Part shown: piece by piece, positions 40,615 through 64,000 of the stretch | How the letters are laid out: each line of letters starts with the position of its first letter | How positions within the stretch are numbered: the first letter of the stretch is position 1 | Source: Oculina patagonica | Lineage: Eukaryota | DNA: 64,000 bases | Assembly (NCBI RefSeq): GCF_052425735.1 | Contig: NC_135758.1 | Location: 19,096,001 to 19,160,000, forward strand | Direction: 5' to 3' | The notes under the pieces: model-generated | Seen by the model: only the letters and a program-made list of their open reading frames with translations | Told to the model about the DNA's origin: nothing | Databases searched by the model: none | Made by a program: the position numbers and the translations under genes

Positions 40615-43484
40615 TTAAGAGTCAATATCACCAAAGGAATTAACATTTACTCCTGTGTAAGTGTTGGTCGGCGGCATCTGCTTACCAGGCTTCATCGGCT
40701 CAGCCAAATAGAACGCAGCTGGTAAGGCCCGCATCTCGGCAGCACAGGACAGCGGAACTGAAAATAAACAATATAGAGATATGTATACTTAACAATTATT
40801 CTATAAGCCCGCGTTGGATACGAGGTGGTAAATAGCCAACGAGGCGCGAAGCGCCGAGTTGGCTATAACGACTCGTATCCAACAAGGGCGAATAGAATAA
40901 TTGTTTTATTAAATTCTTCTTTAAGTTTAAATCGACTGGACATTTCATTTTGATGTAAACGAAGTGATAGTATGAGGAGGCGGGAAAATTTGTGGTGCGG
41001 TGTTCACTTTTTGAGTTGAATGAAACACGAGAGGAAAGCGAGCGAAGCCGGAGTTTTCTTCCCAAGATTTTTATCTAACAATCTTCTCTAAAGTCTTCTT
41101 TATATCTTGGAAATTGTGACAACAGTTAAGATTTACGGGATGATCCGAAGCAAAAGCGTTTCTGGAAACTACACTTCTTGTGCAAGTCGAACGAAGCAAG
41201 TGTTTACATTGTACGGCTGTCATCAAGACTGCTATATTATTTGAAGCGAAATTGAACTCAAAGCGGAACAGATTTATTGAAGTTTAAAAGGACAAGACCA
41301 AGATTGAAAGGTAATAAACTTTACAGAAGTGCTGAGCCTAATTTTAAGACGAACACTAAAAGGAACTGTCATTTTGCCGTTATTTCGTAAATTATTTTCT
41401 GCTTTTCTACTTTATTCACTCGCTCTTGTTGTTCGTTTACAAGTTTATTAATTAAATTTTTCTCATCAATCCTTTTGTTTTGCGTAATTAAATTTTACTA
41501 TGGCATTTCTGTGGTTTTTGTAGGCACCGCTGATTTTTTCTTGTTCACAAAGCTCGCCAAATTTGCTGTTTTCAACCATTTTTTCTGATGGAAGTGTCGC
41601 TTCCCGCAGAAAAATTTTACGCTGAGCGGCACTTGCCGCACTCATTTCCCATATAAGGTCAAACATAGGTATACGAGCTGGTAACCGGGATTCAGTGAAC
41701 CAATCAGAAAGCTAGAAATGCAATATCCGAGGTTGAGAATTTAATATAGCTATTATTAAATTTTCAGCCACGGATATTGCATTTCTAGCATTCTGATTGG
41801 TTCACTCAATCCCGGTTGTCAGCTCGTATACCTTAGTTTGACCTTATTTGGAAAATGATTGCGTTACTGTTGCCAAACTAAAATTTTTCTGCGGGAAGCG
41901 ACAGTTCCATCAAAATGGTTTTGAACAGCAAATTTGGCGAGCTTTATGAACAAGAAATAATTAGCGGTGCCTACAAAAACCAAAGAAATGCCATAGTAAA
42001 TTAAACTACGCAAAACAAAAGGATAGATGCGAAAAGTGTAATTAATAATACTTTTAAACTGAACGCACAGCAAGAGCGAGTGAATAAAGTATAAAAGCAG
42101 CAAATAATTTACGAAAGAACGGCAAACTGACACAGTTTCATTCAGTGTACGTCATAAAACTAGGCTCAGCACTTCAGTAAAGTTTGTTACCTTTCAATCT
42201 TGGTTTTGTCCTTTCATACTTTAGTAAACCTGTTCCACTTTGAGCTCAATTTCGCTTCAAATAATATAGCAGTCTTGATGACAGCCGTGGAGCCGTAAAG
42301 AAGTACAAATTAAACACTTGCCTCGTTCGACTTGCACAAGACTTGTAGTTTCCAGAAAAGGTTTTGCTTCGGATCTTCTCGTAAATAATAATAATAATAA
42401 TTTGCTAATTTATATAGCGCATATTTTCATGTTCTGATCAATCAAATCTTAACTGTTGTCACAATTTCCATGATATTTAGACGACTTTAGAGGGGATTGT
42501 TTGAGGAAAATCTTCTGAAGAAAACTCTCTTGCTCGCTTTCCTCGTATGTTTCATTCAACTCAAGAAGTGAACACCGCGCCAGAAATTTTCGCGCCTCCT
42601 CATACTATCACTTCGTTTACATCAAAATGAAATGTCCATTCGATTTTCAAGTTCAGTGAACTTGAGAAGAATTTAATAAAACAATTATTCCATTCGCCCT
42701 TGTTGGATACGAGTCGTTATAGCCAACTCGGCGCTTCGCGCCTCGTTGGCTATTTACCACCTCGTATCCAACGCGGACTCATGGAATAATTGTTAAATAG
42801 AGAGAGCTGGATTGACTGGTTCGACTAGCTATAACAGCCAAACCAAATTGTCCATGAAATAGCCAAATCGCTCTCGAGCAAAACGTAGCTTGAACCATAG
42901 TTAGTAGTAACTATTGCTTGAACCGAACCATAAACTCGCGCACATGAACAAACAATAAATTTTCAGTTCAGTACGAGAAATTAGACAGTTATAGCAGCCA
43001 TAGCTAAAGGCGAGAGAGCTTGGTCAAGGACTCGGTCGTTTCTTTTCCAAATGCTATTTTACATATCGAAATCGCTATAAATCTCCCAGCGGGAGAGTCT
43101 GCTTACTCAAGTATGTTTTGGAGAATCTGCTCACCGAAGCATCTTTTAGAAAACTTGCTTACTGAAACTGACTGAAAGGGGGACATATTAAATCCAATAA
43201 AACATTGGCAAAAAATATAACGTATTGCAGAGGTTTCTCTGTTCGTGAGTTTCAGAGCTCACTCCTGTAAACAAAATAGCTATTTCAAAAGTTCAACGAA
43301 TTGGCACGTTTAGTTCTAGGAAGGCACATCGTTGTTTTGGATTGATCGTGCATAAGATCTCTCCAAAATACTGCATTCAGTGTGCTGTGTTAAAGAATTC
43401 AGAGGACATAATGAGTTTTCTGATACCTGAAGGTTTCTCCTTTGGACCATCGCGTTTCTCAGGGACAGACTTGATAGCTTCCAT
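40615..43484 (-). CDS. Putative graspetide-like precursor A, complement(join(40615..40757,43427..43484)): MEAIKSVPEKRDGPKEKPSVPLSCAAEMRALPAAFYLAEPMKPGKQMPPTNTYTGVNVNSFGDIDS (66 aa)
   Basis: 58-nt ATG exon, phase-1 GT-AG intron, terminal exon. Same structure in four paralogs. Not in the ORF track. Confidence 0.8.
40790..42796. repeat. ~2-kb imperfect palindrome (two ~1-kb inverted copies of a repeat) inserted in the precursor A intron
   Basis: Arms match from TTAACAATTATT..CGCGTTGGATACGAGGTGGTAAATAGCC to a centre near 41750. The flanks are contiguous in paralog D (~62095-62130). Confidence 0.85.
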
Positions 43485-43784
43485 CTACCAAACAAAATGC
43501 CCTCGTTAATTTGCATTAACGCAGTATTTTCACCTAAATAACGACGGAAAACATACAACAGAAGTAACATTGGCAATAAAACTGGCAAAAATAGATTACG
43601 TACCTCGCTGGATGCAGACAATTTCGCAGTCGCGGCGTGTAGTGAAATTACTTCGATCTTCCTCTTACGAAGTTTCAAAAGATTTTGTAGCGGTATGGCC
43701 TCTTTCAGAATATTTAACTGGAAAGTGTTGACGCATGCATTAACGGGACTGTTTCTTAGTAACTGACGGATTTTAGGGCCGGGC

Positions 43785-44030
43785 TTACTCTGGGGTCTAC
43801 CCCATCCATTGTGATCGATAATGTTGCTGCTCTGAGTAACTGGCAGAATTTTGGCGGTTTACACAGGAATTTCAGTACCCCATCCAATGTGATCGATAAT
43901 GTTGCTTCTACGTAACTGGTACACTTTGGCGGCATCCATTGTAATCGACGAGATTGTTACGGCTGAGTAACTGACAGATTTTATGGGGTTTACCCCGAGG
44001 TTTACCGCATACATTGTGATAGGACATTAT
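43785..44030 (+). repeat. Degenerate ~60-80 bp tandem repeats
   Basis: Recurrent CATCCA(T/A)TGTGATCGATAATGTTG...GTAACTG(G/A)CA units. Confidence 0.6.
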
Positions 44031-45243
44031 TGATTTGGTGGACCCGGCGTTTTTATTTATTATTTCTGAAAAACAGATATCGTAACGCTACAACTAATTA
44101 ATAAAGCTTGCCTTAACCTCAAATAAATGCTTGAGGGGCTTATTTGCAACATCACCTTAGAAACTCGGCGTTTATTCGAGACCAGCAATCGAGAAAATAC
44201 GGTGCCCTTGGGCTATACTCCATCTATTATGAAGTCAGTACGTGTCACACAACTAAAAAAGTGAAAGGAAAATGCGTGCTACTCTTGATCGACTCACAGT
44301 GAGCGATTGTTTTACCCTTCTACTTCATTGTTAAGCTTTTTAGGATAATTTCTTTCTTAGTAAACGTATAAAACAACTGTTAAAGTAGGCTTTACCAAGA
44401 TAACATTTCTTACCTCAAGCTTTTTTAACACCGCTTGGTAAACGCAGCTGAAACGTATGCACCAGTTGTATAAAGACCTATCTAAGTTTCTTGCCCTTTG
44501 TATTAAGAAATGCTAATATCTAACCCGAGGGCTTTCATTTTCGCGGAGATGATATCAACATCGCCTTTTGAAAGACAATTCGTGATGTGTGACTTTTCGT
44601 GTTTTGTTTGAGAATAGTGTCGTGGGTCTGTATCGAATCATCGTGGCATCGATTTTCATTTTCCCAGAATTTGATTGTTTATACGTTCTTGTTTTTTAGC
44701 CAGAAAAGTACGATTATTTTTTTAACGATTCTAAGAATTTTGGGAAATTTCCCTCACAATCAGGAGATATGGAAGATATTAATTTACATTTGTTAGAAGG
44801 ATATTTTCATCTTTTGAAAATTGCCTCTATTGTTGAATTGACGCTGGATTGTTTTTGGACTTTTCTTTAATTGACTTTCATTTTTGTAATTTCAAGAAGA
44901 CACCGATCTTATCAGCATGCGATACTATTCGCTTTAGATAACGAGAGAAAATAGAAAGATTAAAATCATTCTATTTACAACACAGCGGACAAATTTCCAT
45001 TGCAAATTACCATTTAAATAAGGCCGTGACATAATGTAACGTAATTATCGAGACCCGTTTCAAAGGGATTATATTCTATTCGTTTTCGTCAGCAGTAATA
45101 GCCCACGCTGGTCGCGTCAAGTTTCCAAGAAATTCCGGATGCAAAGAATATTTCCCTGTTTTCCTTTCACTTTTCAATCGTGTGACACTGATTTCACAAT
45201 TTTTAACCTGAACGCTTAGCGGCGAAAACCTGCTGTATCAACG

Positions 45244-46661
45244 ATGGCTAACACAATTCTGTGTATTGGCAGCGCGGAAGACCCGCATATTCAAGAGGTC
45301 GATAAACATGTGAAAGCAATAGACAGCAAGGCAAGAGTTGTGCTATTCAACCCTCTTTGTGGAAGCCATTTCATCGAAATCACCGCCGGAAATCTCTCAG
45401 AGCAAGGTCCTAGCTGTACTATTGTTGTGGATGACGAACGCATCAGTGCCGAATCGATCAGGTCTGTGTGGTATCGCTGGAAACCGGCCGTTCTTTCAGC
45501 AAATGAAGATCTCCAAGGTCTCATTGCCAAAGACTTCGCCTTAAAGGAGTGGAAATCGGTGATTCGTTCACTCGCGTCGTATCTGCCTCACGCGAGGTGG
45601 TTGAACCCGCTGGGGGCCTCGGAGCTGATAAACTGTAAACCGCATCAACTGAAGCTCGCGCAACAAGTTGGGCTGACTGTGCCACAGACCACCATCACAA
45701 ACAACCCAACAGCCGTGGAAAAAATCTTCCAGCAAGTGGATCACGGACGAGTGATATTCAAAAGCCTAACGCCTCTATTTGTGCCGCCAGATAAACTGCT
45801 ATACACAACAGAGATCACAAAAGAATTTCCATCCGTGTCCCGGGCAAGTGTAACACAGTGTCCAGCTATCTACCAGGAGCTGGTGGAAAGGAAATCAGAT
45901 TTGCGTATCACCGTCGTTGGTCGAGCAGTGTTTGTTGCCTGCATTGCTTCGCAGATACTTGATGAGAAGAAAGATCGCTTGGATTGGAGACGATGCCAGG
46001 AAAAGGACGAGATGTACAGTATAGCACAGGTATAATCATCTTATCACGGTTATAACACAGCATGTAGCTTTTAGGGACGGACCATTGAATTTTGAAAGGG
46101 GGGGGATTGGGCAATTACGAAAAAATTCTCGAACAAGGAAAGTAGGAGTAAAAAATCATGCAGAAGTAAGCACGGATTACAATTCAACCAAGTCCCTCTT
46201 TGTTAACATAGAGTTGGTAAAAGACTGAAATTCTTGCAAATATCAATGATCAAAAAAATCTTACTCCGGAGAAATTGGGCAACAACTCTACCCCAAAAAT
46301 CAAATGGTCCGTCCTTTACGGAGCTTTTAGGATCTATTGTTCCGTTGCTTATAGATGTTTAGCTGTTCGATTCCCCAGTCCCCACGAATTTGACTTCCTC
46401 GCATTTATTTCTTTCATTTTTTAACAGGTAACTGAGTCATTTAAAGAGCGCTTGCTAGAGTTCCACGAGAAAGCAGGCTTGGTTTTTGGCGCTTACGACT
46501 TCTTAGAGCGCGGTGATGACGTCATATTCCTCGAATGTAATCCCGGAGGAGCCTGGCTCTGGTTAGAAAACAGTCTTGGTCTTAAAGTGTGCGAACACGT
46601 TGCGCGATACCTTCTGGGTAAAGATGAAGCAAACTCTTCCAGAGCCACAAGCAGTGAATAA
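45244..46661 (+). CDS. ATP-grasp peptide ligase, RimK-superfamily MvdC/MvdD (graspetide synthetase)-like, join(45244..46029,46428..46661), ~339 aa
   Basis: Motifs [91 protein letters not shown]. Phase-0 intron CAG|gtataa...aacag|GTA joins ORFs 45244 and 46452 in frame. Confidence 0.9.
46073..46316. mobile_element. MITE in the ATP-grasp intron
   Basis: TIR AGGGACGGACCATT / AATGGTCCGTCCTT. Same family as 25044-25278. Confidence 0.7.
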
Positions 46662-47255
46662 ATGAATGAACTTAAGAGATCCAAATTTAAGACTGACATT
46701 ATTAGTTTCGGTTGTATAAAATAAACGAAAACAATTTATACGCGGGACTTCTGGTATGTAGACCACACTGTTATGACCCACATTTGAACATTTGACGTTC
46801 TTTATCTTTTTGTGAAATTTTGATTAAATCATTGTGATGTAGAGGTTTTATTTGAAACCGGTTTAAATGTGCGGAATAGTTTTAAGTAGCAAGACCTTGC
46901 TATCCCATCTCTGTAGAAGAACAACATGTTGCCAAAAGCAAAAGACAAAATAATAAAAAAACAGAAGATAGAGAAAAATGTTTGCAACTTAATTGCAACC
47001 TGTAGTATGTAGTTAAGTTACAGATCTTAATCGGTTAAACCTGAATAAACCTGTTTTTGCCGGCAGCTTTTGGTGAGTCAAAATGTGATTGGGCACGAAT
47101 TCTCGTCTGATGCAATCCCACAGTGATCTCTTTGTGAAAATGAACCAGAGATGAGTTTATACTTGTTGCACATGTGACACACATTTTTATTGGTTTATAA
47201 ACCTTTAACTGAACAGTAAGTGAGCGTTGGAGCGATTTTCCGTTCGCGAGTTCGC

Positions 47256-48335
47256 TTAAGCATCAACTTCTGAACAATGGGGTCCTTCTTCTGTACATCC
47301 GATCACTCCTGGAACAGTCATGGGCTCCACCAATGAGAAGGCAGCAGGGTATGTACGCACCTCGGCTGCGCATGTCATCGGCACTAAACAAATATCACAG
47401 CATGAGTAAATTATGACTGAACCCAATATCATATGCAGTGGATGGCTGCAATATTTAAATCAACTTTTCACCTTTTTAGTAACGGTGAACTAAAATTAAA
47501 AAAACTCACTGAAATGCAGTTAAAAGGGTTTAGGACAGTCAAAAACAACAAAAACAACTGATGACTCAAATTGCACACTTTTTCAAACAAACAAATGCCA
47601 TTGTTACAAGTTTAGCCGCGTCTTTGCATTCTTTGAGGAAAAAGTCCACAATGAGCCATAATCTAACTCTATAACTCCTGTTATTCCCTTGTTCACCTGT
47701 ACACCAGAAGAGAGCCAAAATGACTTGAATTGGTGTTCATTGTCATTTTTATTCGCTGTCTATACTGGCCGTAAAAAACCTTACAAATCCTTACATTTGT
47801 TGGCAAGATTTCCGCACAGGACCCTACATTAGTTATGCATACAATTTTCTGACTGATTCGTTCTTTTCATGATTGCTGTTTATGCATAGTGATAGTATGA
47901 AATAGTTGCATACATAATTAATGTAGGGTCCTGTGCGGAAATCTTTCCCATTTGTTCATTGTGGGCTTGGGGAACCTGTGCTTACATCAAGCGAAGCGAA
48001 ATAAACACTCGAAGTGGGAATATAATTTGTGACGTGATGCTGCAGTATGTAGAGTTTAAAACTAGAAAATAAACAACTATTAAACGAACATGTAACACAT
48101 ATGAATTGATCCATGTTTTATGTATAACTACGATGAATATTACCTTTGGTATTTTCTTTTGGATGTTTCTTCGTCTGAAGCGCTTTCTCTGCATTTTGGA
48201 GTACAATCTGCGAGAAGGAACACACCAGTGCGTAATGAACTCCACAGAAACAGCAATCCGTTAACTAAGCAAAAGTAACCTCGACAAAAATACAACAAAG
48301 CAAAAGTATTCACCTACCTCGCCTGAGGCAGACAT
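47256..48335 (-). CDS. Divergent putative precursor F, complement(join(47256..47383,48144..48207,48318..48335)): MSASGEIVLQNAEKALQTKKHPKENTKVPMTCAAEVRTYPAAFSLVEPMTVPGVIGCTEEGPHCSEVDA (69 aa)
   Basis: The terminal exon aligns with the other leaders (VPMTCAAEVRTYPAAFSLVEP vs VPLSCAAEMRALPAAFSLAEP) with the same phase-1 intron. The upstream exons splice in frame. Confidence 0.7.
47810..47941. repeat. Short inverted-repeat element in the precursor F intron
   Basis: TTCCGCACAGGACCCTACATTA / TAATGTAGGGTCCTGTGCGGAA. Confidence 0.7.
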
Positions 48336-50136
48336 TTTCGCAGTTGCAGCAAAACTTAACTCAGTTGCGGACACCAACAGAATATTTACTAAATGGTTCA
48401 TTAACTTTGGGTGAGTTCAGATATTTCATGCAAATGATATTACATGGTATTGTGACCAATCACATGCGAGCTATTGTTGTTGTGTCCGTCCTTGTTCTTT
48501 TCCATTTGAGTACCCCAAGAGACAGAGTTTATGGAGCAAAAAAGTTCAACAAACAAAATTGGAAAAAAAAATTGGAATTTTGATAGTATCAGTACAAAAC
48601 GCGCGAAATTAAAGTGAATCGTGATCAATAAATATTATATGTAAATTCAGTTTAAATTCAGTGTAACAACGTTGTCGGTATCTTTAGAATTTTCTTTTAA
48701 TTACGAGTGTTTGGCTTCGCATCGGAAAAAGTAATTGCATTCTTCTTGCGTTTGGAGTGACCAATTACATTCTAACTTATCAATAACACGTTAGTCTACT
48801 TTGTACGGGTTGTTTATTCAATACAGTGATCTTCAGTATCGTATTTCAGTAAGGTTTTCTAAAATATTTCGACTGCTAGAACTTTTTTTGTTATTTCAAA
48901 ATATGCCTTTTTCGAAGCGAAGCCATAACAAACTTTATTAAGTTTCTTTTAATTTCGTTTGATTTGAAAAGAATGTACATTGACATTTACAAAAGTAATT
49001 GTTATTTTATCTTGAGTATTGTAGAGTTGTACAATACGATTTGGAATTTATTTGCACAGCAGGTATTGCTGGTGACACCTTTGGTTTGGCCCGAAACTCG
49101 TAAACAACTTAGTATTAATATGTGGATGTGGGCGGAATAATGTTAAGCTAGGGTACAGTCTGTGTCCGAGCCAAGTGGCCCATACAGCCGGAGCTTATCC
49201 CGGTTTCTGTAGCATTAAGCGACTAGGAGTATTGCTATTCCCCCCTGGATGAGATGCTAGTCCATCGCATCGTCTCTTTAAAAATGCGCGTGCAAGATTT
49301 TAATAGCATTCAGAGAAGAGTTGTAATACCAGTGCTTTAATTTAGTAAACTTGTAGCTGAGGAGTAAACATATAAAAAAGAAAGCTGATTCCGTTGTTGC
49401 AGTGGGACTGCTTATCCCCGCTACAAACTGATCGACTGACAATAAACATCTCCTAGGATAATGGAAAACAATGACTGGTTTTCTCACAAAATAAGTCTTG
49501 AGGAACATGCGAAAAGTTTGTGGAAATGACTTCTTAACGGTCTTCTTTTCGGAAAAAAGCACTGGGGACTTGATTCCACCTAATGAAAGCTAGCGAAGTC
49601 CACCTCTTATAAAAGGGCCTTTTTTAAACACTGTTTTAAGGTGGCTCGATCGCGGGTTTTTGAGTGACGATGCCTTTCAACTTTGAGAAACATGTATGCC
49701 ACCGTAAACAAAACAACTGAAAATCGATAAATACAGCTGTACTAAGAAAGATGAAAGCTTCAAATGAGGTACGTTTAATTGAAATCGGAGTTACCATAGC
49801 AACATTATAACGTCACCACCCATTTTTACAATAGACCGATTTTCTTGCTATACAGGGAAACTTTTGTAAAAGGTCTATCTTGATCTTTGACTGGAGATGG
49901 TTTTTTCGAGGTTTGCAAAATTAGAAGAATTTCTATACGAGCGTTTTTAAAAAAATTTCGAATGAAGTTTTGAGCCACCTTTACTAGCTTTTTAAGCCGA
50001 ACAATTGATTGTTAAAGAGATAAATAGTCATTCGGGTTTACGCTTTAACAGTTTTATTTCATCGATTATAACGCCATTACATCTCATGGAATCACGATTA
50101 ATCAAGTTGATGCTGGCAAACATCTCGCTGGTCAAG

Positions 50137-51293
50137 TTAAGCGTCCCAATCACTGTAGGAATTGAGATTCATCCCCATGGTGTAAGAGGCTGTTGGCATT
50201 TGATTGCCGGGGTCCTTTATCGGCTCAGCCAATGAGAAGGCAGCTGGTAAGGCCCGCATCTCGGCAGCACAGGACAGCGGAACTGAAAATAAACAATGCG
50301 AAAAATACGTGGATAAGAACATCCAATTTCCATATATGGGGAGATTAAGGGCTGGATCGAATGACCTTTATAACAGAAAAAAACCAAACTGGCCAGCCAA
50401 AGCAAAACGCAAAAATACAATGTAAACGCTTAAACAGAAATATAAATTTTTAGGTACGTGGAAAAGACAGCTTAAATGCTAAAGGCGAGAGCTTGATCAA
50501 GGAAACTTTTTGTTGACAAATGCTATTTTACATATCCAAATCACTACTAACAATCTTCTAGCTCTTAGCGACATAAACTGTTTTCAAAAGGATCTTTTCA
50601 GAGAAAGCCAAAGTTGAAACAGCGACGTTTCTAAAATGAAGGATCATATGCGTGACTCAATTGCACTCTTTTAATTCTATAAGAATTTATTTTACAAGAA
50701 TATCGAGGCTGAAATTTGCGAAATTTAAAGAACATTTTAAGAATAAACCCGAGGCTAAGATTTTGAAAAGAATATAATTTTGTGTGTTGAAAATTTGTAA
50801 GAGAATATAAATATATATGTTTTTTCTAATACCTATAGAATTCGTCCTTTTTCAAAACGGCAAAACTAGACAAATGCTGATGCTATTGACAGCTCGATGA
50901 ACGATACATGTATAACATATGTATGGCATACAGCACAAGCAAAAAATGTTATACGCTATAATCTAAGAATATTCACAAGAATATTCAGCTTGGGTCGGGA
51001 GAAACAATATTCTTATACAAAAAGAGTGTAGTTTTTTTTAACTCACAATTGAAAACACAATATAGCTAATTTTTCAAAGAATTGGCATGTTCACTTTTAG
51101 GAGACTTGTTGTTCTTATAAAACATTTTATCTTCAGGGACTATTCTGGTTTAATCGTGCTAGAAATCTCTCCAAAGTGCTGCATTAAGTTTGCTGTGTTA
51201 GAAAATTAGAACAAAATAATGAGTTTTTTTGATACCTGAAGGTTTTTCTTTTGGACCATCGCGTTTCTCAGGGACAGACTTGATAGCTTCCAT
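50137..51293 (-). CDS. Putative precursor B, complement(join(50137..50282,51236..51293)): MEAIKSVPEKRDGPKEKPSVPLSCAAEMRALPAAFSLAEPIKDPGNQMPTASYTMGMNLNSYSDWDA (67 aa)
   Basis: Same two-coding-exon structure as A. Canonical splice sites. Upstream non-coding exon donor at ~51390. Confidence 0.82.
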
Positions 51294-51516
51294 CTACCAA
51301 ACGAAATGCTCTCGTTAATTTGCATTAATCCAGCATTTTTACCTAAATAACGGCGGAAAACATACAAAACAGAGATAAAGCCTCACTTACCTCGATTTTA
51401 CTTGATTTTTTCCTTCGGAGACTTCGGGGGTACAAGTATCCTTTTCATCTCGCCAGAATATTACACACCCAAATTGTTGAAAGCGTTATAGTTATCTCAT
51501 TAAGTCGTGGGAATCT

Positions 51517-51550: not shown

Positions 51551-52722
51551 CTTGTAATTAATATCATATATATTGTTGTTGTTGTGATTTTATCTAGATA
51601 TGTTTTCAAAGTCGCCACAAATCCTTGATTTTTTGATACATTGCGCTTGCGTGTTACAGTGTTGACAATTTTCGCTGTGACTGCAACGCATCATCATCAT
51701 GATCATCATCATCGCTATTATATAACGGTCATTGAACATCCAATTCAACGAAAGGAGTTTTATTATTCCACTATTGGGCCATTTTACCATATTTGGGTAA
51801 AAGAACGCGCAACATATGCCACGTTATTACACTGCAGGGCAAAAATACGGACGGACAAACTTACCCAATACGGACCCAAACTTAGTGGAAAAAATAGTGG
51901 AATAATTAATCCCTTATTTAAAGGGACATTTTGTTAATTTGTCAAATTTAAAAATACGAATTCATTGCTCGTCTAATAAAATACTACGCAACTCGCAAAA
52001 TATCCGCGCGTATTCTATGTTAAACCATTGAATAAGCTGTATGAATTATTGATTAAATTACACGTCACGGGGGTAGTTCCAGCATTGATGCGGGTTAGTT
52101 CCAGCATGAATATTCAGAGAGCAATAAAACACTCAGAAATCTTTGCAAATACTGACAACAGAAAACATTAAGCAGTATATATACGAGGGGAAAACAGCGG
52201 CCCCATTATTTTCGCTTTTCGGAATTTTCTTCGAAGAATAGGATGCAAGAATAGTCATTATCAAAAAACCCTCTTGGGCATCGAAATTTCTTACAAATTA
52301 CCTCATTTGTTATTTCAGCCTTGTTGATGTTGTTGTTAGTATAAGTTTTCGAGGCTCCTTCTTGTTGTCAGAGTTATGCAAACTGAAGGAGTTGCTTTTT
52401 GTTGCTCACTGGAGATGATTTGCAATTGATATTTCTACCGACACTTAGATTCTGATATTCAACTGAGAAGTAAATTCCAAACACAGATAACACTTAAACA
52501 CAAATGTCGCATGTTACCCGTGCCTTTCATACAAAGCCGGATCTCATTTTACTTAGAAAAAAGGGAAAATATTAATTCTATATTATTCAACTCGTGACAT
52601 TTGATTGGCAGGCGACTTAGTGGTAAGATAATTTACAGTTTCGAACAAGAAGTGTAAATTTTATTTGTGGTGTCTTGATTCAAAGCAATTATTCACAGTT
52701 TCTGCGCGAAAACGTTGCCGCA

Positions 52723-52888
52723 ATGATCTCAGTGGTTTCGTCTTGAATTTGCCTGCTAGCCCTGTGTATTTTAATAGTCATCTTCGTTTTATTTTACACA
52801 AAAATATGGAAAATGCTAATCCGCTGGCCGCTCAACAGATGAATTGATCTTTTCTACCACCGAATAATAAGCGATAAAGGTCGACCCG
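52723..52888 (+). pseudogene. Pseudogenised exon 1 of the beta-hydroxylase paralog
   Basis: 166-nt copy of 58951..59116 with two in-frame TGA codons (TCT TGA; AGA TGA). The intron is interrupted by a TE and no exon 2 is seen downstream. Confidence 0.85.
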
Positions 52889-52949
52889 GTAAGTTTTAAT
52901 GTTCGTTTTATTTTGTGGATATTTTGTGAGCGGCAGTCGGAGTCTTTAA

Positions 52950-53871: not shown

Positions 53872-54165
53872 TTAAAAGCTTTGATAGTTACTTCGCTTAT
53901 CATCATTTCCTTTTCCCTACTGACTGAGAAATAGAGCCTTTAAGGCTGGTTTTCATCATAATATAATCGCCCCGATCGTTTCTATCGCCTTTGTCACTTT
54001 AAAAGGTTTTTTTGCGATCGGGGCAATTATTTGAGAACAATACACAGGCGATCACTGATGTCTGCAGCGATTGGGGTGATCACGATCGCTTGGATCGCCC
54101 TTGTGCTATCCTCCAATAGCTTCTCTTTCCCTTTTTTCGCCGTAAAACAGCAATAACTGAGAAGT

Positions 54166-54450
54166 TAGAGCGGTTTTCAATTGAGTGTCGTAAAACCAAA
54201 ACCAAAGTAATTACTCTGGTCAATCACAAAGGAAACAGACAATCCAGTGAACCAATTAAAACTCGAAGCAAATACATGTAGCTGGCACGAAGCGCGGGAA
54301 AACGTGCGCGAGCGAGTCACGATTGGTTTTGGTTTTAGTTCTGATTGGCTGAGAAAGTGGCGCGAGATTTTTAAGCCAATCACTGAGCGTAGTAATGCAA
54401 AACCAAAGCAAACGCAATTTACTTTCGACACTCAAGTGAAAACCGCTCTA
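54166..54450. mobile_element. MITE
   Basis: TIR TAGAGCGGTTTTCA.TTGAGTGTCG / CGACACTCAAGTGAAAACCGCTCTA. Confidence 0.75.
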
Positions 54451-55151
54451 GGAGGCCACGAGATTTGCTCTTTCATTGAAGGCTCCCACTGCGTTGGATC
54501 TAGGATTAAAATGATTGTTTTTCGTGGGTCTTCGCTCATACCAGGCGATCGGGACGATCATTTTTAGAACCCCCGATCGCTTCCATCAGTGCTTCGACCT
54601 CCTAGTCATCCATATTAACCATTGCAGTAGTTAACGGTCTGCCCCCTTAAGAAGAGCCTTTACGGTATTTATTTGTGATTCTGAGAAATCAGGAAAGTTT
54701 TCCTGGTCATCAAGACATGCGAATTACTGTTTTGACATTTATCCCCTGTTAAATAATTGCCATTGTTAAAATGGTTCCAGTTTTTGGATTTTCACAGTAA
54801 AACATTCTGTTTAATTTTAAACGTTCTAAAAATAACTTAAATAACCAACTAACCAAATAACCACAAATTTGAAAATAAGCGCGCTAGTAACGCTTGAATT
54901 TATACAACGACTTCTTAACAGGCTTTTTTTCGGAAAAAGGACTATTTTCTAGGGACTTGATAACGGAAAGAACATCTAATGTCCACCTCTTATTAGCGTT
55001 CTAAGCCGAAAAGTAGTATGAAAGACAGATGAAAAGTCATTCAGAATTACGATTTTACAAGTTTATTTCTTCGATTATAACGTCATTACATCGAATCACA
55101 GTTAAGTATTCGTTATAGTGTGTCCAGTTAAGGTGACGCTGGCCTGACTAG

Positions 55152-56809
55152 TTACCAGTCCCAATCACTGTAGGAAGTGGCATGCTTCCCAAAGGTGTAA
55201 GAGGCTGTTGGCATTTGATTGCCGGGGTCTTTCATCGGCTCAGCCAATGAGAAGGCAGCTGGTAAGGCCCGCATCTCGGCAGCGCAGGACAGCGGGACTG
55301 AAAATAAACAATGCGATGAAAAGATTGATAAGAACTTTCCAGATTTAGGGCTGGCTCGAATGACTCTCATAACAGCCAAACTAAACTGGCTACAAGCCAA
55401 ATCAAAACGCAAAAGCAAAGTCCAAACGCTTGAACAGAAAAAAGCTTCAGTTAGGAGGAAAAGACAGTTAGAAATCAAATGCAAGAACTTTATTTAATAA
55501 AATTTTCGTTGCCAAATGCTATTTTACATCTCCAAATCTCTGTAATTACCGGTAAGCGAGAGAAAGTCAAACTGCTTTCGAAAGCATCTTTTAGAGAACG
55601 CCAAAGCATAGTTAGTAGTCCCCTCTACTATGGCCATAGGCGTACGAGGCGGGAGGGGGGGGGGGGCTGCAGCCCCCCCAGCGCCAAAATTTTTCGGGCA
55701 AAATGCTCGGAATTCGGGCAACAAGCCTAGAGAAAAAATAGAAAATAAGCCGACAAATCTATGACGTTCAAAACGAATTACATCAACAGAAATATTTATT
55801 GGAAATATAACTTTGTAGTCTTGATTTCTCATGTATGTTTTCGTTTCCTCTCGCAAACTGCTTTAATCCCCTACGATTTTTCTCGCAATTTTTGTGTTAC
55901 CCCACAGTTTGATTCAGTTACAATCATTTTGAAGTAAGAAGGATATTGGCAAGGTTGGCCAGAAGTTAGGATTCTCCATAGCTTGATCGTTTGCGCGCGG
56001 TGAATCCAGCCCTTTGAAACAGACCTTGAAACAAAGCTGTTTTAAAGATGTGATAAAGCTAGTGCTTTGACTCAAAATAAATGCTTAGTCGTAAGGGCTA
56101 GCTCAAAACTTTCAACGAAATGTTTTAACCCATTTACCTGACACGCTTTATCATATCTTGAGTTAGGGAATGCAAATTGCTGCCCGAAAATACGTTAATT
56201 TTTGCTAAACTCAGAAGTGGATAATAATATATTTCAGAATAAAAAATATACAGTGCATTGACATCACAACGAGACCTTATAAAAAAGCTTTCGTTTCCTA
56301 AAAGCAAGCAGGAAAGTTGAGGTTTGTACACAACTATTTCAATGTACGTTTCGTTGCCCATTTTAAATGCCTTTTTATTCGGCTTTCAATGCATGTAATT
56401 TTTTTTCGGGCAATTTGGTCTCCGCCCCCCCAGGTCCAAAGGTGCCCGTACGCCTATGACTATGGCCAAAGTGGGAAATTAATCTGATAAAACAGCGACG
56501 TTTTTAAAATGAGGGATTAGATGTGTTACTCAATCAGTGGATTTTGAACTCACACCTGCAAAAACAATATAGCTAATTGCATTTCAAAGAATTCGCATGT
56601 TCACTTCTGGGAAGACATGTCGTTGTTCTGATAAAAAGATAGTATCTTTAGGCACTATTTTGGTTTGGTCGTGGTAAAAATCTGTCCAAAGTACTGCATT
56701 TAGTTTGCTGTGTTAAACAAATTAGAACAAAATAATGATTCTTTCTCATACCTGAAGGTTTTTCCTTCGGACCATCGCGTTTCTCAGGGACAGACTTGAT
56801 AGCTTCCAT
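55152..56809 (-). CDS. Putative precursor C, complement(join(55152..55297,56752..56809)): MEAIKSVPEKRDGPKEKPSVPLSCAAEMRALPAAFSLAEPMKDPGNQMPTASYTFGKHATSYSDWDW (67 aa)
   Basis: Same exon structure and splice phase as A, B and D. Confidence 0.82.
55635..56458. mobile_element. Non-autonomous hAT-like element in the precursor C intron
   Basis: TIR CATAGGCGTACG / CGTACGCCTATG with a perfect 8-bp TSD ACTATGGC (55627-55634, 56459-56466). Confidence 0.85.
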
Positions 56810-58950
56810 CTACCAAACAAAAATAATGCTCTCGTTAATATGCATAAACGAAGTATTTTTAAACCTAAATACCTGCGGAAAGCATACAAAACACAGCGAA
56901 CAGAGACAAAGCCTAACTTACCTTGTTTTTACTTGGTTTTTACTTCGGAGACTTCAGGGGTAAAAGTATTCCTTTTCACCTCGGTATTTCTCGTCAGAAT
57001 ATAAACACACCCACAGTTGTTCGTGGTTATCTGATTGGTCGATTTTTTCCCTCGTGACAGGAACTTGTAATTAATATCATATTTGTTCTTTGGGATTTTA
57101 CCCAGATATGCGGTTTTCATTTTCGCCTCAACTCCTCGTTTATTTGATACAATGCGCCTGTGTGTTACAGTGTTGACAATTTTCTCTGTGACTGCAACGC
57201 ATCATCGCTATAAAAACCCCGACCACTAAACATGCTAAACAGCCAGTAAAACGAAATGTGTCTAATTATTGATCAGATTACACGTGGTCGTTCCAGCATC
57301 GATACAGGTTTCGTTCCAGCCTGAATACTTTTAAAAACAACAAGAACTGCAAGCAGTTTATAATCGTGCGGGTAATGTTTGACCACCTGACCTCTTTCAG
57401 TGCTTTGGCTTAAAGGCATGGCGCCGCACAGTAAAATCATTAGAAAAGCAGTCACTTGAGAAACACACAAGTCGTGTTTGCGTTAGTCACGGAGTGAACG
57501 TGACATGAATTTCCTTTACCACATCATCTTTTGCTTTTTAAAACCACATGCCTAGCCGGAAAAATGCCTGCTTACGCATGCAAATATTTATTTTGTTCCG
57601 AATGTTCAATAAAATAAACCCAAACCAGTTCATTTAAAAGAAAGCCAAATCACGTCAAAATAAAGAGTAGACTAAGGCCATCCCATTGTGTTTCTCCGTT
57701 GAGCGTCTTTCGACAAGCTTTTGGTAATTCCCCTGGCGCGATGACGTGTATCCCGTGCTTTGACACATTCTTGCTGAGCTTGCAACTTACGTTTCGATTC
57801 TCAAAATACCGTAAACTCGATCAAAACAAAAATTGGGATATCCAGAAAATAAGTCGTCGTTTTGCAATATTTACACGTTCCGGGTAAATTGTACGACTTG
57901 TACTCGCTCCGAGCCAAACGCTTGAGTAACACAACAATAAATATTTCACACAAACAGAGCGCAGAGTATTCAAACAGAAAATAGGTGAATGATTATTTAT
58001 AGCTACAAGTGAGAGATCGCGTGACATGGGTCTGACGTAGTGGTAGTTTTAAATAGCTTGGACATGTCCAAGCGGTCTTTGTTTTCGCTATGTGATTATA
58101 TTCAACCCTCTCTTCTTGTAAAATATGGAATGGAACAAAATTATACATTTCAGAGAGCAGAGTGTTCATGTTAAACGCGAGTGATCGGCTGATTGCTATT
58201 AAATATTATATCTTGCGTGACTGTTACAGAAGAGCCGGCTGGGCCGCGTGGGTCTGGATCGATTTACCGACAAAACAAAAAAATCTGACACAGATTATGA
58301 ATCGGGACCAGGCCCCGCCCGATTAACAATAAAACACTCAGACATCGGACATTCTTGGAAATGACCTGCCACAACAAAAACATTAAGCAGTATACGAGGA
58401 AAAAACAGCACCCCATTATTTTTGCTTTCCTGACTTTTCTTCGAAGAAAAGGATGCAGAATAAGTATAAGATTTGATAATTATACTGGTATAATTGAGTG
58501 AGATAGTCATAATAGCTCGGGCATCTAAATTTCTTATAAATTACCTCAATTGTTATTTCAGCCTTGTTGATGTTGTTGCTAGGTAAAGTACCCGAGGCTC
58601 TGCTTGTTCAAACTGAACGGATTGCACCTTGTTAGTCACTGGAGATGATTTGTAATTTTTCTTTTCACCAAACACTCGGACTCTGATATTCTACTGAGAT
58701 AATTCCAAAGATAACACTCGTACACAGATCGAGATGTCACGTGTTACTTGCGTGACTTCCATAGAAAACCGGAAAACATTGTTCTCAGAAAAAGGGAAAT
58801 TTTCTATTCAATATAATTCAACTCGTGACGTGTGATTGGCATGCTTCTTAGTGAGTCAGATGATAATTTTCAGTTTCGATCTAGAATTGCAAAGCTTGTG
58901 AGTTATCTTGATTCAAAGCTGCACAGTTTTCAAGCGAAAGCGTGGACGCA

Positions 58951-59886
58951 ATGGTCTCACTGGTTTCATCATTCTTTTGCTTGTTAGCCCTGTGTATTTT
59001 ACTAGTCGTCGTCGTTTTATTTTACACAAAAACATGGAAAATGCTAATCAGCTGGCCGCTAAACAGATTAATTGATCTTTTCTACCACCGAATAACAAGC
59101 GATAAAGATCGACCCGGTAAGTTTTAATGTTCGTTTTATTTTGTGGACATTTTGTAGTCGGCAGTCGGAGTTTTAAAAAAGCGTTGCTAGTTACTTCGCT
59201 TATCATAATTTCCTTTTTACTACTGACTACTGGGAAATAGAGCCTTCATTTCGCTGATGAGCGTGGCTTATTTTTGTTAATTATTTTCAGCGGTGTTCCA
59301 GAACCATGTTCAATTGTTTCCATGGCTGAGCCAGCTGGAAGCTAACTGGGAAGCGATTCGAGATGAGTTGTTGTCCTTCGTTGAAAAAGGCACCGGACTG
59401 TGCAACGTCCATACTACAGGCGGAGGTGAGCTTAACAAAGAAAGCAAATGGAAGCTGGCGATGGTTTTTGGTTATGGCAAACCCATAGACGAAGTGAAAA
59501 GCTCGTTTCCCTTGACTCTGTCGATTTTGACAAAGCTTCCCGAAGTTCAAAACGCTGCATTCTCGCTTCTTAAAGCAGGTGGGTCCATTCCCCCGCATGT
59601 TGGCTCGACCGCGTCTATTCTCCGCTACCACCTGGCGCTAATTGTCCCGGATAATGGCAAGCACTCGTGGCTTACAGTGGCTGGCGTCAACATACCGTGG
59701 GGAGAGGGGAAAGGGATCTTGTTCGACGATACGTTTGAGCATTCTGCTCGAAATGGCGCAGAAAAAGATCGTGTTGTGTTGATTGTGGACATTTTCAGAC
59801 CCAATCTTGGACTAGTTGATGGATTGATTCAGAAAATGGAAGTGTGGAAACGTACGCAAGATTTTATTGCTGGCAGGCAAGGATAA
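58951..59886 (+). CDS. Aspartyl/asparaginyl beta-hydroxylase-domain 2OG-Fe(II) dioxygenase with N-terminal membrane anchor, join(58951..59116,59291..59886), ~253 aa
   Basis: FPWL..LEANWEAIRDEL, AAFSLLKAGGSIPPHVG, LRYHLAL, WGEGKGILFDDTFEHSARN, DRVVLIVDIFRP. Phase-1 intron CCC G|gtaag...ttcag|CG. Exon 1 is hydrophobic. Confidence 0.88.
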
Positions 59887-59939
59887 AGGACATGGTTGAA
59901 TTTTTCTGATCCGTCTACCCAGTGTTTTAAAGTTTTCTC

Positions 59940-60362
59940 CCGGGGGGGGGGGGGGTACTCCATATAACGGCCTATACGGGGAGGCTCCGCCCGAAAGGGG
60001 TACCTTTTTCAGGCTTCAGGTATATAAAAGGGTAGCGATTTCACAAGTTTAGGTATATGAAAGGGTATGAAAATCCGTCATTTAGGTTTTTTAAAAGGCC
60101 TGTAATTAAAATATTTCGAACAGGCCCACTTTATGGCTGTATTATTTTAATTTATTAAGCGCTTCAAAAAAATGACAAGAAAATGTCCTGTTCTAAGGCT
60201 ATGTCACGTCTTTTAGGTATATGAAAGGGGTACTTTTTTTCAATAAAAGGTATACGAAAGGGGTACAATTTCTGTCAAAATGGTATATAAAAGGGTAAGG
60301 GGTAAGAGCTTGGGGCGGAGCCTCCCCGTATAAAACTTTTTTGAGTGCCCCCCCCCCCCCGG
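59940..60362. mobile_element. MITE-like repeat, same family as 9010-9423
   Basis: Reverse-complement match including TACGGGGAGGCTCCGCCCGAAAGGGGTACCTTTTTCAGGCTTCAGG. Confidence 0.75.
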
Positions 60363-60899
60363 AGTTTTCTTTGCTTGTATTAAGTCAGTTGGGAAAATAA
60401 ACCATGTAAACGGAGAATATGCGTTCAGTTTTCAATCATTGATAGTTCTCAAGTTCGTAATGCATGAAGCTGTCTCGTTATATTGTTTCGTAAGAAGAGA
60501 ACTGATTGTTCAGATAAAGGAACTCTCGAAGACTATTCTCCGCTATCTGACTGACTTTGCTCTAGGTTTTTGTTTGAATTTATTTTTCTGTTTCTGTGTT
60601 AAATTTTAGGTTGAGGTGACGTAGCATAGTGCTCAGTTTTCTTTAATCACGTCTAGTAAGTAGTTCCTGTACCGAACTATCGCATTGTCATTTTTGGGGC
60701 GAGAGGGGTCATATAAAAAAATAGGATTTACAAAGGGGGGCAAGATAAAAATATCTGATGACGAAGGAGGGCAAATGCATTTTTCAGGCACCGTCGATCA
60801 AATTCCACCCCCATCCCATACAAAATAAACGGTCACTTTATTTAGGCAATAGGGAATAATGATAATCATATCTCCGCGCAACCATGTATTATCCTCTAT

Positions 60900-61520
60900 T
60901 TAGAAATTAAGGAGTACACGGCAGTTACAGAGCTTTCAATGTTCTAAAGAGCAAAATATTTAATAAAATAAAAATCCAGGTGTATAATTGAATTATTTAT
61001 AAACGATTCTAAGAAAAAAGGGAAGTTCCCTTTATTACAGTATCACATAAAACAGACACGCAAATGCGTGTCTTGACATTGATCTACCGAAAATTAATCT
61101 CCAATGATATTTTTGAATTTGTCTCAATCGTTTACTTTCATTTTCCACGGAAAAGAATATAAATAACTTACTTTTCCAATGATGAAACCAAACTAACCAG
61201 GGCCAATTTTATAATTATCCACCAGAAATTTAGGTGAACACGGCAGTTGCAGAGCTTTTGACGTTCTAAAGAGCAAAATATTTTATGGAACAAAGATCCG
61301 GGTGTAGGATTGAATTATTCATAAACGATTCTGAGAAAAAAGGGGACTTTCCTTTTTTTATCACAGACATGCAAATTCGTGTATTGATATTGATCTACCG
61401 AAAATTAATCTCCAATGTTGTTTTTGGATTTTTCTTAATCGTTCACTTTCATTTTCGACTGAAAAAATATTAATAACTAACTTGTCAATAAAAAAACCAA
61501 ACTAACCAGGGCCAATTTTA
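60900..61520. repeat. ~320-bp tandem duplication; also homologous to ~40380-40570 downstream of precursor A
   Basis: Units CACGGCAGTT.CAGAGCTTT..GTTCTAAAGAGCAAAATATT...AACCAAACTAACCAGGGCCAATTTTA repeated twice. Confidence 0.75.
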
Positions 61521-61893
61521 AAAAACCTTAAAAAGTCTAAACTAAATATATGGGTTACATTCCTCGAAAAAAGGTGAAAAAGTCATAAGATTATTTTCCG
61601 GGAGTTAATGGAGGGGATTTTTCTTTTTTAAACGGTCTGGCTTATGTTTGAAAATAATTTTTTTCTAAAAGAAGTTTAGGTATACCAAATGCCGCCCGAA
61701 ATGTTTCATTGTGGCTATTGCGACTAATCATGAAACTAAACGCGTGCAATTTTGCGGGCAACGAGAGGTGAAGAGACATTCACGTTTATGATTTAACTAT
61801 TTTATTGCATGGATTATAATGTCATTTCAGTACAGCTAACTCTTTTCAGTATCTCCAGTCACTATGATGCTAAGAGACATGTGGCTGGTGAAG

Positions 61894-62842
61894 TTATGCG
61901 TCCCGATCACCGAAGGAGTTGGCATGACATATATCTGTGTAAGTGTTCGTCGGAGGCATCTGTTTACCAAAGTCGATCGGCTCAGCCAAATAGAAGGCAG
62001 CTGGTAAGGCCCGCATCTCGGCAGCCAAATAGAAGGCAGCTGGTAAGGCCCGCATCTCGGCAGCACAGGACAGCGGAACTGCAAACAAACAATATAGAGA
62101 TATGTATACTGGCTAAATAGAAAGCTGGAATGAATGGTGCGACTAGTTATAACAGCCAAACGCTTCCCCAAAGAAGAATGGAACTTGAACCGACCCATAA
62201 ACACGCGCACATGAAGTCAGAACAAACAATAAACACGGGCCTTACGTGCACCCATGCACGAAGAGGAGTAAGTAAGTAAGTACATCAACAAATAATAAAG
62301 GCAGTTAGCAACTAAAGGTGACTTTATTTTTTCTTTACCAAATGCTATTTTACATATCTAAATCGCTATAACTGCTATAAATCTTGCAGCGAAAAAATCT
62401 GCTTACATGAGTATCTTTTGGAGAATCTGCTTACTGAAGCATCTTTTAGAAAACTTGATCACTGAAAATTCTCTTTGAGAATACCTAAACTGAACTGAAA
62501 GCCTTTAAGGGGAACATTAATACGACGAAACAGCGTCGTAAAATGTAAGATAAAATAGGTTTCTCTGTTCGTGAGTTTCAGAGCTCACTCCTGTAAACAA
62601 AATATCTAATTCGATTTCAAGGAATTGGCAGGTTTAGTTCTGGGAAAGGATGTCGTTGTTTTCATGAAATATGTTAAATTTTAGGCACTATTTTGGTTTG
62701 ATCGTGCAAAAGATCTCCCAAGAACACTGCAATGAATTTTCTGTGTTAAAGAATTCGAACAAAATAATGAGTTTTTTTTTATACCTGAAGGTTTTTCCTT
62801 TGGACCATCGCGTTTCTCAGGGACAGACTTGATAGCTTCCAT
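61894..62842 (-). CDS. Putative precursor D, complement(join(61894..62078,62785..62842)): MEAIKSVPEKRDGPKEKPSVPLSCAAEMRALPAAFYLAAEMRALPAAFYLAEPIDFGKQMPPTNTYTDICHANSFGDRDA (80 aa)
   Basis: Same structure as the other copies, with an in-frame 39-bp tandem duplication in the leader. Confidence 0.8.
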
Positions 62843-63893
62843 CTACGAAACAAAACGCGCCCGTTAAACAGATTAAGCATCTGCTATAAACGCAACATTT
62901 TTACTCTCACAACGACTAAAAAGAGATAAAACCTTCCCTTACCTTGCTCTTGGTCGATTTTTTCTTCGAAGACTTCTAAGCTTTTCGTTCAATTGTTTAC
63001 CGTGAAATTTCTCGTCAGTGCACGCCACCACCTCGGACTGCGTGATATCATCAAGTCGAAGGGCTCTGATTGGTCACAGTTTTACCTCGTGACAGGAACT
63101 TATCACAAACGTCACTATTGTTTCCCCTAATTGGGTTTTTACCCTAACCTGTTTTCGTTTTCGCCGCAAACCCTGAGTCATTGAATGCGCCCGCGCGTTA
63201 CATTGTTGACAATTTTCTCTGTGACATCGCTATTTTTAGACCGACCACTTCAGACCCATGCAGGCTACCATTAAATATGTTGAATTATTGTTTACAGCAT
63301 CAAAACAAGTTCGTTCCAGCCTGAATACTGAGAGAACAATAAAACACTCAGACATTCTTGGAAATACTTGCACAACAAAGAAACAAACAACTTTTGACTT
63401 TTATTAGAAATTAAGGATGCAGTGAAGGTCTAAGAGCCCATAATAAAAAGGTTGTGTGATGTGACCGATATATGAGTAAACTGATTGGTTATCTAAATTT
63501 TTCATAAATAACTGTACTATAAAATAAATATATGGCTTAAATTCCCAGAAAAAAAGCGAAAAAATGCTAAGATATTTTCTCCGGGTGCTTATGGTGGGGA
63601 GATTTTCGTTTTTGAATGGTCGGGCTTATATTTGGAAGGAATGTTTTCTAAAAGATGTTGAGGTGTAACAAATGTGGCGCGGAATACTTAAGTGTGGCTA
63701 TTGCGACTGATCATGAAACCAAACGCGCGCAATTTTGCAGGCTACGAGAGATGAAGAGACATTCACGTTTGCGATTAATATTTAACAATTTTATTTTATG
63801 GATTATCATGTCACGTCATTACAGTACAGCTATTTTTTTCAGTGTGCCCAGTCACAGTGAACAGCGATGCTGGCAGATATATCGCTGGTGAAG

Positions 63894-64000
63894 TTAATAG
63901 TCCCAATCACTGTAGGAAGTGGCATGCTTCCCAAAGGTGTAAGAGGCTGTTGGCATCTGATTACCAGGGTCCTTGATCGACTCAGCCAATGAGAAGGCAG
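63894..64000 (-). CDS. Putative precursor E, partial terminal exon: ...AFSLAESIKDPGNQMPTASYTFGKHATSYSDWDY*
   Basis: Open frame nearly identical to precursor C, truncated by the window edge. Confidence 0.78.
   Translation of the reverse strand, partial: AFSLAESIKDPGNQMPTASYTFGKHATSYSDWDY

Follow-up and report, generated by a model that had tools for sequence, protein, structure and literature searches.

A cluster of split micro-genes around an ATP-grasp ligase in the stony coral Oculina patagonica: probable precursors of a graspetide-type peptide pathway

The stretch of DNA analysed here, referred to as the window, comprises 64,000 nucleotides of contig NC_135758.1 of the stony coral Oculina patagonica. 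From position 40,615 onwards it carries an array of small, spliced genes ("micro-genes"), and inside the array lies a gene for an ATP-grasp ligase. A sequence-only reading of this DNA had proposed that the micro-genes encode precursors of peptides that are made on the ribosome and modified after translation (RiPPs). That proposal is supported by the presence of a graspetide-type ligase within the array, by splicing, by an invariant leader motif, by a model of the ligase-peptide complex and by the recurrence of the linkage in other hexacorals. The micro-genes probably encode the precursor peptides of a graspetide-type RiPP pathway that the coral carries in its own nuclear DNA.

The micro-gene array and its ligase

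Eight small genes are distributed over about 34 kb, all of them on the minus strand and all with GT..AG introns (110-2669 nt). Seven are two-exon copies, of which A-E lie in or across the window and G and H just past it. The eighth gene, F, has three exons and a distinct N-terminus and core, but shares its central motif with the two-exon copies. The 58-nt ATG exon that the earlier reading had assigned to copies A-D was recovered by a six-frame search of the window, which located four minus-strand copies of exon 1 (MEAIKSVPEKRDGPKEKPS) and four of exon 2 (VPLSCAAEMRALPAAF...), as well as a fifth, partial copy, E, that crosses the window end (Table 1). The next 28 kb of the contig complete E, whose first exon encodes the same peptide, and add G and H, in which five residues of exon 1 are changed (MEALKSVPEKRNDSKEKPT). 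Every junction in the two-exon copies has the form ..TCAG/GT....AG/TTCC and is in phase 1, after which exon 2 reads to a stop codon. The predicted precursors are 66-80 residues long and have no signal sequence.

The exon-1 sequences of A-E differ from each other at only the three places named in the earlier reading, and all three changes are synonymous (CCA/CCG, AAG/AAA, GAG/GAA). The introns have diverged, as was also claimed; those of the two-exon copies are 161-2669 nt long. Their ends are about 80-88% identical where they adjoin the exons, whereas the exons themselves are 97-100% identical among A-E, so that the pattern of the array is not due to chance. A palindrome of about 2 kb (40777-42808), with arms that are about 1 kb long and 87-94% complementary, takes up most of the intron of A (2669 nt). 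In copy D, 13 residues of the recognition motif described below are duplicated in tandem (AAEMRALPAAFYL occurring twice, 61894-62078, minus strand). The five differing cores of A-E were read exactly as the sequence-only reading had listed them.

The spliced product of B is identical to the NCBI protein P0090, "hypothetical protein ACROYT_G001674 [Oculina patagonica]". The NCBI model P0100 (ACROYT_G001671, Oculina patagonica; 73 residues) holds the whole 66-residue reading of A from its residue 8 onwards, starting seven residues upstream of the ATG of A and having the same intron annotated. Very probably the micro-genes are already carried in NCBI as hypothetical proteins of this species.

Transcripts were examined in contigs of three public RNA runs and in raw poly-A reads of a fourth, aligned to positions 45300-51299. 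The ligase intron (46030-46427) is spliced out at a GT..AG joint in the contigs of three runs, and the intron of B (50283-51235) in three runs and in one raw read. Both introns of F are spliced out in three runs, and their joints 47383>48144 and 48207>48318 are further crossed by 19 and 7 minus-strand poly-A raw reads, respectively. As the genome contains no intron-less copy, these joints derive from RNA, and spliced transcripts are thus seen for B and F. Contig depth, which is a rough measure only because close paralogues are pooled in it, is about 220-10,000 across the exons of B and 10-46 across those of the ligase; such a contrast is in keeping with a substrate that is abundant and an enzyme that is scarce. 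A short dispersed repeat at 49150-49270 has an RNA-contig depth of 4,000-26,000, with many different flanks and no match in Rfam, and an Rfam scan of the whole region from 40 to 64 kb found nothing.

The ligase gene has 339 codons and a single GT..AG intron, and is the sole copy in the 529-Mb genome. Its exons match the NCBIfam models of ATP-grasp ribosomal-peptide maturases (MvdC, 6e-33 and 7e-10). The closest solved relatives by sequence in the Protein Data Bank (PDB) are MdnB (8e-22) and MdnC (9e-21). For further profile scores and for the model of the complex, use was made of P0005, a full-length homologue from another coral, which is 88% identical. P0005 matches the NCBIfam RiPP maturases MvdC, SAV_5884 and MvdD with E-values of 4e-47 to 9e-37 compared to 2e-4 for RimK. 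The predicted ligase fold has a pLDDT (predicted local distance difference test) score of 89. Its first 32 PDB matches are all graspetide macrocyclases, with template-modelling (TM) scores of 0.70-0.85 for the top ten; they include AMdnB, CdnC, MdnC, PruB, MdnB and PsnB, and RimK ranks behind them. The catalytic and ATP/Mg-binding motifs are preserved: K175, Q213 (QE), R223, D249-W-R and E300-x-N302 in P0005 numbering. These residues are invariant in the bacterial and coral sequences, and the same residues are read in the two exons of the window. By family and by predicted fold, the ligase is therefore of the graspetide type (MvdC/MvdD, MdnB/MdnC, PsnB). The ATP-grasp enzyme of the coral mycosporine pathway was considered as an alternative identity and rejected, the best family and structure matches all being peptide macrocyclases.

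Table 1. Positions of the micro-genes, the ligase and the neighbouring enzyme genes in the window.
Feature	Position	Strand	Content or evidence
BBE-like FAD-linked oxidase, several exons	36133..39469	-	FAD_binding_4 3.5e-19, BBE 8e-8 on separate pieces of open reading frame
Precursor A exon 2 + stop	40615..40757	-	starts at 40757; leader motif, linker, core PPTNTYTGVNVNSFGDIDS
Precursor A exon 1	43427..43484	-	ATG at 43484, 58 nt
ATP-grasp ligase exon 1 (262 codons)	45244..46029	+	NCBIfam TIGR04185 6e-33; PDB MdnB 5ig8 8e-22
ATP-grasp ligase exon 2 + stop	46428..46661	+	TIGR04187/04185 C-terminal match; intron removed in RNA
Precursor F exon 3 + stop	47256..47383	-	VPMTCAAEVRTYPAAFSLVEP + core MTVPGVIGCTEEGPHCSEVDA
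Precursor F exon 2	48144..48207	-	joints 47383>48144 and 48207>48318 in RNA
Precursor F exon 1, coding part (MSASGE)	48318..48335	-	sequence + RNA joints
Precursor B exon 2 + stop	50137..50282	-	starts at 50282; core PTASYTMGMNLNSYSDWDA
Precursor B exon 1	51236..51293	-	starts at 51293; RNA joint to 50282
Truncated hydroxylase 5' duplicate	52273..52949, also 53874-53940	+	promoter + first exon; no catalytic exon
Precursor C exon 2 + stop	55152..55297	-	starts at 55297; core PTASYTFGKHATSYSDWDW
Precursor C exon 1	56752..56809	-	starts at 56809; sequence
Asp/Asn beta-hydroxylase-like gene, exon 1	58951..59116	+	N-terminal membrane anchor
Asp/Asn beta-hydroxylase-like gene, exon 2 + stop	59291..59886	+	2-oxoglutarate (2OG) oxygenase domain, Pfam PF05118 5e-37
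Precursor D exon 2 + stop	61894..62078	-	starts at 62078; duplicated leader motif; core PPTNTYTDICHANSFGDRDA
Precursor D exon 1	62785..62842	-	starts at 62842; sequence
Precursor E exon 2	63894..64000	-	crosses window end; exon reaches 64039, exon 1 at 65698-65755 (window-extended coordinates)

Recognition segment and core of the precursors

The proportion of nonsynonymous differences (pN) and its ratio to that of synonymous differences (pN/pS) were computed pairwise within the array, region by region. The VPLSC..LAEP segment of the leader has a pN of 0.023 (pN/pS about 0.24), which is about one-tenth of that of the core (pN 0.237, pN/pS 0.65). The values are 0.058 (about 0.28) for exon 1 and 0.116 (about 0.16) for the linker between leader and core, which also varies among the copies. 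The ratio for the leader is thus not near 1. The leader-coding start of exon 2 (50220-50282 in B) is nearly identical in seven copies even at synonymous sites, its pS being 0.09 compared to 0.36-0.73 downstream, which suggests gene conversion or a constraint at the nucleotide level.

More is learned from the comparison between species. An alignment of 12 sequences was assembled from the paralogues of this genome and from homologues in Porites lobata, Porites lutea, an assembly labelled Actinostola sp. and transcriptomes. The columns C-A-x-E-x-R-x-x-P-A-A-F-x-L are invariant in all 12, whereas the N-terminus encoded by exon 1 varies freely from species to species. As judged from this alignment, the recognition element is the middle segment of the precursor rather than exon 1. 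The canonical core PTASYTFGKD(A/V)NSYSDWD is conserved in several corals; the same sequence comparison indicates that this core is ancient and that core diversification is a trait of the tandem array of O. patagonica. The proposal of a constrained leader followed by a variable core thus stands for the middle segment and for the copies within the array. It does not extend to exon 1, which changes between species and in G and H, nor to the canonical core, which is retained among corals.

All seven two-exon copies keep a Y-T pair, a Ser and a C-terminal D-x-D, and in the cores of F and of the Porites lutea homologues Thr/Ser is followed by Glu/Asp. In sequence, this order of residues matches the arrangement expected of graspetides, in which the donors (Ser/Thr/Lys) are situated N-terminal to the acceptors (Asp/Glu).

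Graspetide leaders follow a general motif, "Phhx(1,2)h", in which a Pro is followed by a hydrophobic pair and, after an interval of one or two residues, by a third hydrophobic residue; it is held to have the same function as the microviridin sequence PFFARFL, which contacts the middle subdomain of the ligase (PMC8939145). The P-A-A-F-S-L of the coral precursors satisfies this motif. A model of the complex between P0005 and the peptide encoded by exon 2 of copy B gave an ipSAE (interaction score derived from predicted aligned errors) of 0.64 compared to 0.03 for the best control, a mark that 51 of 78 solved complexes attain, as do 2 of 108 mismatched pairs. Three runs share at least 48% of their contacts, and the pLDDT of the partner is about 50. 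In the confidently modelled part of the interface, M8 and A10-K22 of the peptide (ALPAAFSLAEPIK) lie on ligase residues 174-210 and 252-253, in the middle subdomain. The model thus suggests that the invariant leader motif docks onto this subdomain.

Neighbouring enzymes and conservation of the cluster

Two further enzyme genes are found close to the precursors. The first encodes an Asp/Asn beta-hydroxylase-like protein of 253 residues, in which the metal-binding PH.G and FEH motifs are retained in the alignment to human ASPH. Among the top matches, its orthologues share 74-96% identity, which then falls to about 36% with short enzymes of bacterial type. A truncated duplicate of its 5' part shows 79% nucleotide identity to 58516-59176 and, in a tblastn comparison, 75% identity over exon 1; judged by its sequence, it is a relic of a duplicated module. 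A second intact hydroxylase was sought in the array, and only this 5' remnant was found, so that the notion of a repeated precursor/hydroxylase module holds only in part. The second gene, for a BBE-like oxidase, is situated directly downstream of precursor A and is a possible further member of the cluster. Upstream in the window, at 5114-7674 and 15396-22432, there are a YqaJ-exonuclease/SWIM open reading frame, a DDE_Tnp_4 transposase open reading frame and a chondroitin N-acetylgalactosaminyltransferase gene, which is ordinary host and transposon content.

The linkage of precursors to the ligase, which the sequence-only reading had named as a point to check in cnidarian genomes, recurs in two assemblies. 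Upstream of the ligase of Porites lutea there is a pair of precursor-like exons, which carry this leader and a core that is short (..SRIYTSFSDE). An F-like precursor, the ligase, a precursor and the hydroxylase follow each other within 6 kb in the assembly labelled Actinostola sp. In Porites lobata, the order is hydroxylase (divergent), canonical precursor and, about 6.4 kb downstream of the latter, a gene with FAD_binding_4+BBE domains, all oriented relative to each other as in O. patagonica; the hydroxylase neighbour thus recurs in two other hexacoral assemblies. The ligase of the assembly labelled Actinostola sp. is interrupted by an in-frame stop within LRITVVG, a conserved motif, and is 74-85% identical to coral P0005, more than would be expected of a sea anemone. 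At the ligase locus of Actinia tenebrosa, no peptide with the coral leader was found within 10 kb. The ligase paralogues of the Actinia type (P0066, P0068, P0101), which are intron-less in A. tenebrosa, lack DWR and ExN. Without these catalytic motifs, the anemone-type paralogues may do something else.

Named ligase homologues above 40% identity are all from hexacorals (Acropora, Porites, Actinostola and Actinia). An exhaustive search returned relatives by the thousand, 30-43% identical. Of these, three were checked and all are bacterial, two being on gene-dense contigs with a small open reading frame just upstream of the ligase and one being from Desulfocurvus. In a maximum-likelihood tree, the rooting of which is provisional, the 14 cnidarian ligases form one clade inside this radiation, with a Shimodaira-Hasegawa-like approximate likelihood-ratio (SH-aLRT) support of 98. 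The simplest reading of the tree is a single ancient transfer from bacteria.

Proposed pathway and its relation to known systems

In the pathway proposed here, each micro-gene would give rise to an abundant mRNA and to a peptide of 66-80 residues without a signal sequence. The precursor would consist of the variable N-terminus encoded by exon 1, the recognition segment (CAAEMRALPAAF[S/Y]LAEP), a short linker and a core of 19 residues. A single cytosolic ATP-grasp ligase, presumably acquired from bacteria long ago and now bearing an intron, would bind P-A-A-F-x-L through its middle subdomain, use ATP to activate the carboxylates of the two conserved C-terminal Asp residues and esterify these to the conserved Thr/Ser residues, forming macrolactone rings; in the canonical core a Lys lactam might also be formed. 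The esterification of Thr/Ser by Asp at the expense of ATP is the established chemistry of the graspetide ligase family. Tailoring of the product would then fall to the membrane-anchored Asp/Asn beta-hydroxylase-like enzyme, with the BBE-like oxidase perhaps taking part, and the product would presumably also be freed of its leader and exported. By analogy with microviridins, the product may act as a protease inhibitor.

A number of observations weigh against this pathway. No modified peptide has been observed so far. The ligase scores 161 and 127 bits, compared to NCBIfam equivalog cut-offs of 425 and 475, and is thus a distant member of the family. The complex was modelled with the ligase of another coral instead of the spliced protein of the window, and since solved ligase-leader complexes exist, its score may reflect likeness to these and is no proof of binding. 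Direct evidence of splicing is confined to B and F among the precursors; A, C, D and E were read from the DNA, although the reading of A is contained in P0100. The low pS of the leader means that gene conversion may add to its apparent constraint. Because of its membrane anchor, the catalytic side of the hydroxylase may not face the cytosol, and neither a protease nor an exporter was found near the array. Finally, the precursors fall into no known family of precursors, five of the peptides having been compared with Pfam and NCBIfam with no hit.

The missing family match, the lack of a chemical demonstration of modification and the position of the canonical precursor of Porites lobata, more than 10 kb from any ligase, would also be in keeping with a reading in which the micro-genes encode small peptides that are specific to the lineage, act in the cytosol or in signalling and have nothing to do with the ligase, their neighbourhood being a coincidence of tandem duplication. 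This is unlikely, because the linkage to the ligase is found again in Porites lutea as well as in the Actinostola-labelled assembly, the invariant motif obeys the graspetide leader rule and coincides with the modelled interface, and the cores keep Thr/Ser ahead of Asp. A secreted neuropeptide would, moreover, need the signal peptide that these products lack.

It is less likely still that the ligase has been domesticated for another task, such as the RimK-like addition of amino acids to a protein, or is catalytically dead, the peptides being mere regulators or not binding at all. RimK is indeed the next-best fold match, DWR and ExN have been lost from the paralogues of the anemone type, and the ligase in the assembly labelled Actinostola is interrupted by a stop codon. 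However, the coral-type ligases keep every motif that is invariant in bacterial RiPP maturases, are 74-92% conserved among corals and, as the scores of P0005 show, agree far better with the models of these maturases than with RimK. Although the nearest non-cnidarian relatives of the ligase are bacterial, there is hardly any room left for bacterial contamination or an assembly artifact, which is excluded by spliceosomal introns that are removed in RNA, a GC content matching the host, flanks with animal genes and transposons on a contig of 49 Mb, and orthologues in several independent coral assemblies.

The graspetide-type pathway proposed for the coral most closely resembles that of the cyanobacterial microviridins (MdnA with MdnB/MdnC), with which it shares the family and fold of the ligase. 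In both, a leader segment that begins with Pro and hydrophobic residues, PFFARFL in microviridins and LPAAFSL in the coral, is placed on the middle subdomain of the ligase, and in both the core sets Thr/Ser donors before acidic acceptors and ends in S-D-W-(D/E). The coral precursors differ in being nuclear and intron-bearing, with one gene for each precursor. The coral genome has one ligase, which is below the MvdC and MvdD equivalog cut-offs, whereas microviridins use two, an ester-forming and an amide-forming one. Neither an acetyltransferase nor an ABC transporter, as in microviridin clusters, is found near the coral array. Microviridin cores have the motif TxKxPSDx(E/D)(E/D), which is absent from the coral cores, these being of the form ...YT(x6-7)S[YF]xDxD. 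The coral leader LPAAF[SY]L likewise does not contain PFFARFL (PMC8939145).

Clusters in which a graspetide ligase is accompanied by a 2OG/Fe(II) oxygenase are known from bacteria as well, namely that of corallotide, with CorC, and those of group 18, with SmaO/SmaX, an Asp beta-hydroxylase (PMC13097080). SmaO hydroxylates Asp (PMC13097080), which is the activity predicted by the Pfam family of the coral neighbour. The coral hydroxylase differs from these enzymes in having an N-terminal membrane anchor and an intron, and in the coral a BBE-type oxidase is conserved as a further neighbour. Marinostatin is a bacterial bicyclic omega-ester protease inhibitor, in the short core of which a Thr and a Ser are esterified to two Asp residues and the sequence ends in ...S-D-x-D. 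The S-D-W-D ending of the coral core resembles it, the likeness being one of the core alone; marinostatin is bacterial and its rings are smaller.

Two animal systems bear on the proposal. The mycosporine-like amino-acid cluster of anthozoans is a pathway of cyanobacterial type that among metazoans is found only in anthozoan genomes (PMC3640398), but its ATP-grasp enzyme is a different one, attaching amino acids to a core that is a small molecule, and the cluster includes neither a peptide macrocyclase nor precursor peptides. Stryphnines are sponge knottins with a Ser-Glu side-chain ester, and no grasp enzyme was found by the authors in the sponge transcriptome (PMC13418204). They share with the coral peptides an animal, ribosomal origin and the omega-ester, which in the coral is proposed; unlike these, they are secreted, cysteine-rich knottins. 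According to the same paper, of 2026, graspetides come from bacteria and archaea, and the literature searched, which extends to 2026, presents them as such (PMC13418204, PMC13097080). In the literature searched, mostly outside subscription journals, there was no report of graspetides, omega-ester peptides or graspetide ligases in cnidarians or in any eukaryote, and the sole ATP-grasp transfer discussed for corals was that of the unrelated mycosporine pathway. What would be new here is that the graspetide logic, itself known, occurs in the genome of an animal, where the genes are split, leader and core are of a new class and the gene cluster is eukaryotic and conserved.

With somewhat less assurance than for the precursor assignment itself, it seems likely that microviridin- or marinostatin-like cyclic depsipeptides are produced by hexacorals themselves (stony corals and some sea anemones). 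The means would be an ancient, horizontally acquired and now intron-bearing graspetide ligase, which would have been retained over hundreds of millions of years together with the precursors, the hydroxylase and the BBE oxidase in an animal gene cluster that is conserved. This would be the first graspetide pathway encoded by a eukaryote, and in Oculina its array of precursors would have undergone diversification. If so, a new class would be added to the short list of animal RiPPs, and the whole logic of the bacterial systems, comprising a leader-guided macrocyclase, a precursor array and tailoring enzymes, would have been rebuilt in eukaryotic gene architecture. Natural-product chemists would gain new ring scaffolds with a built-in library, as one ligase appears to serve at least three types of core. 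Coral biology would gain a family of abundant small peptides with a role that can be tested, such as protease inhibition that serves defence or the control of symbionts and microbes.

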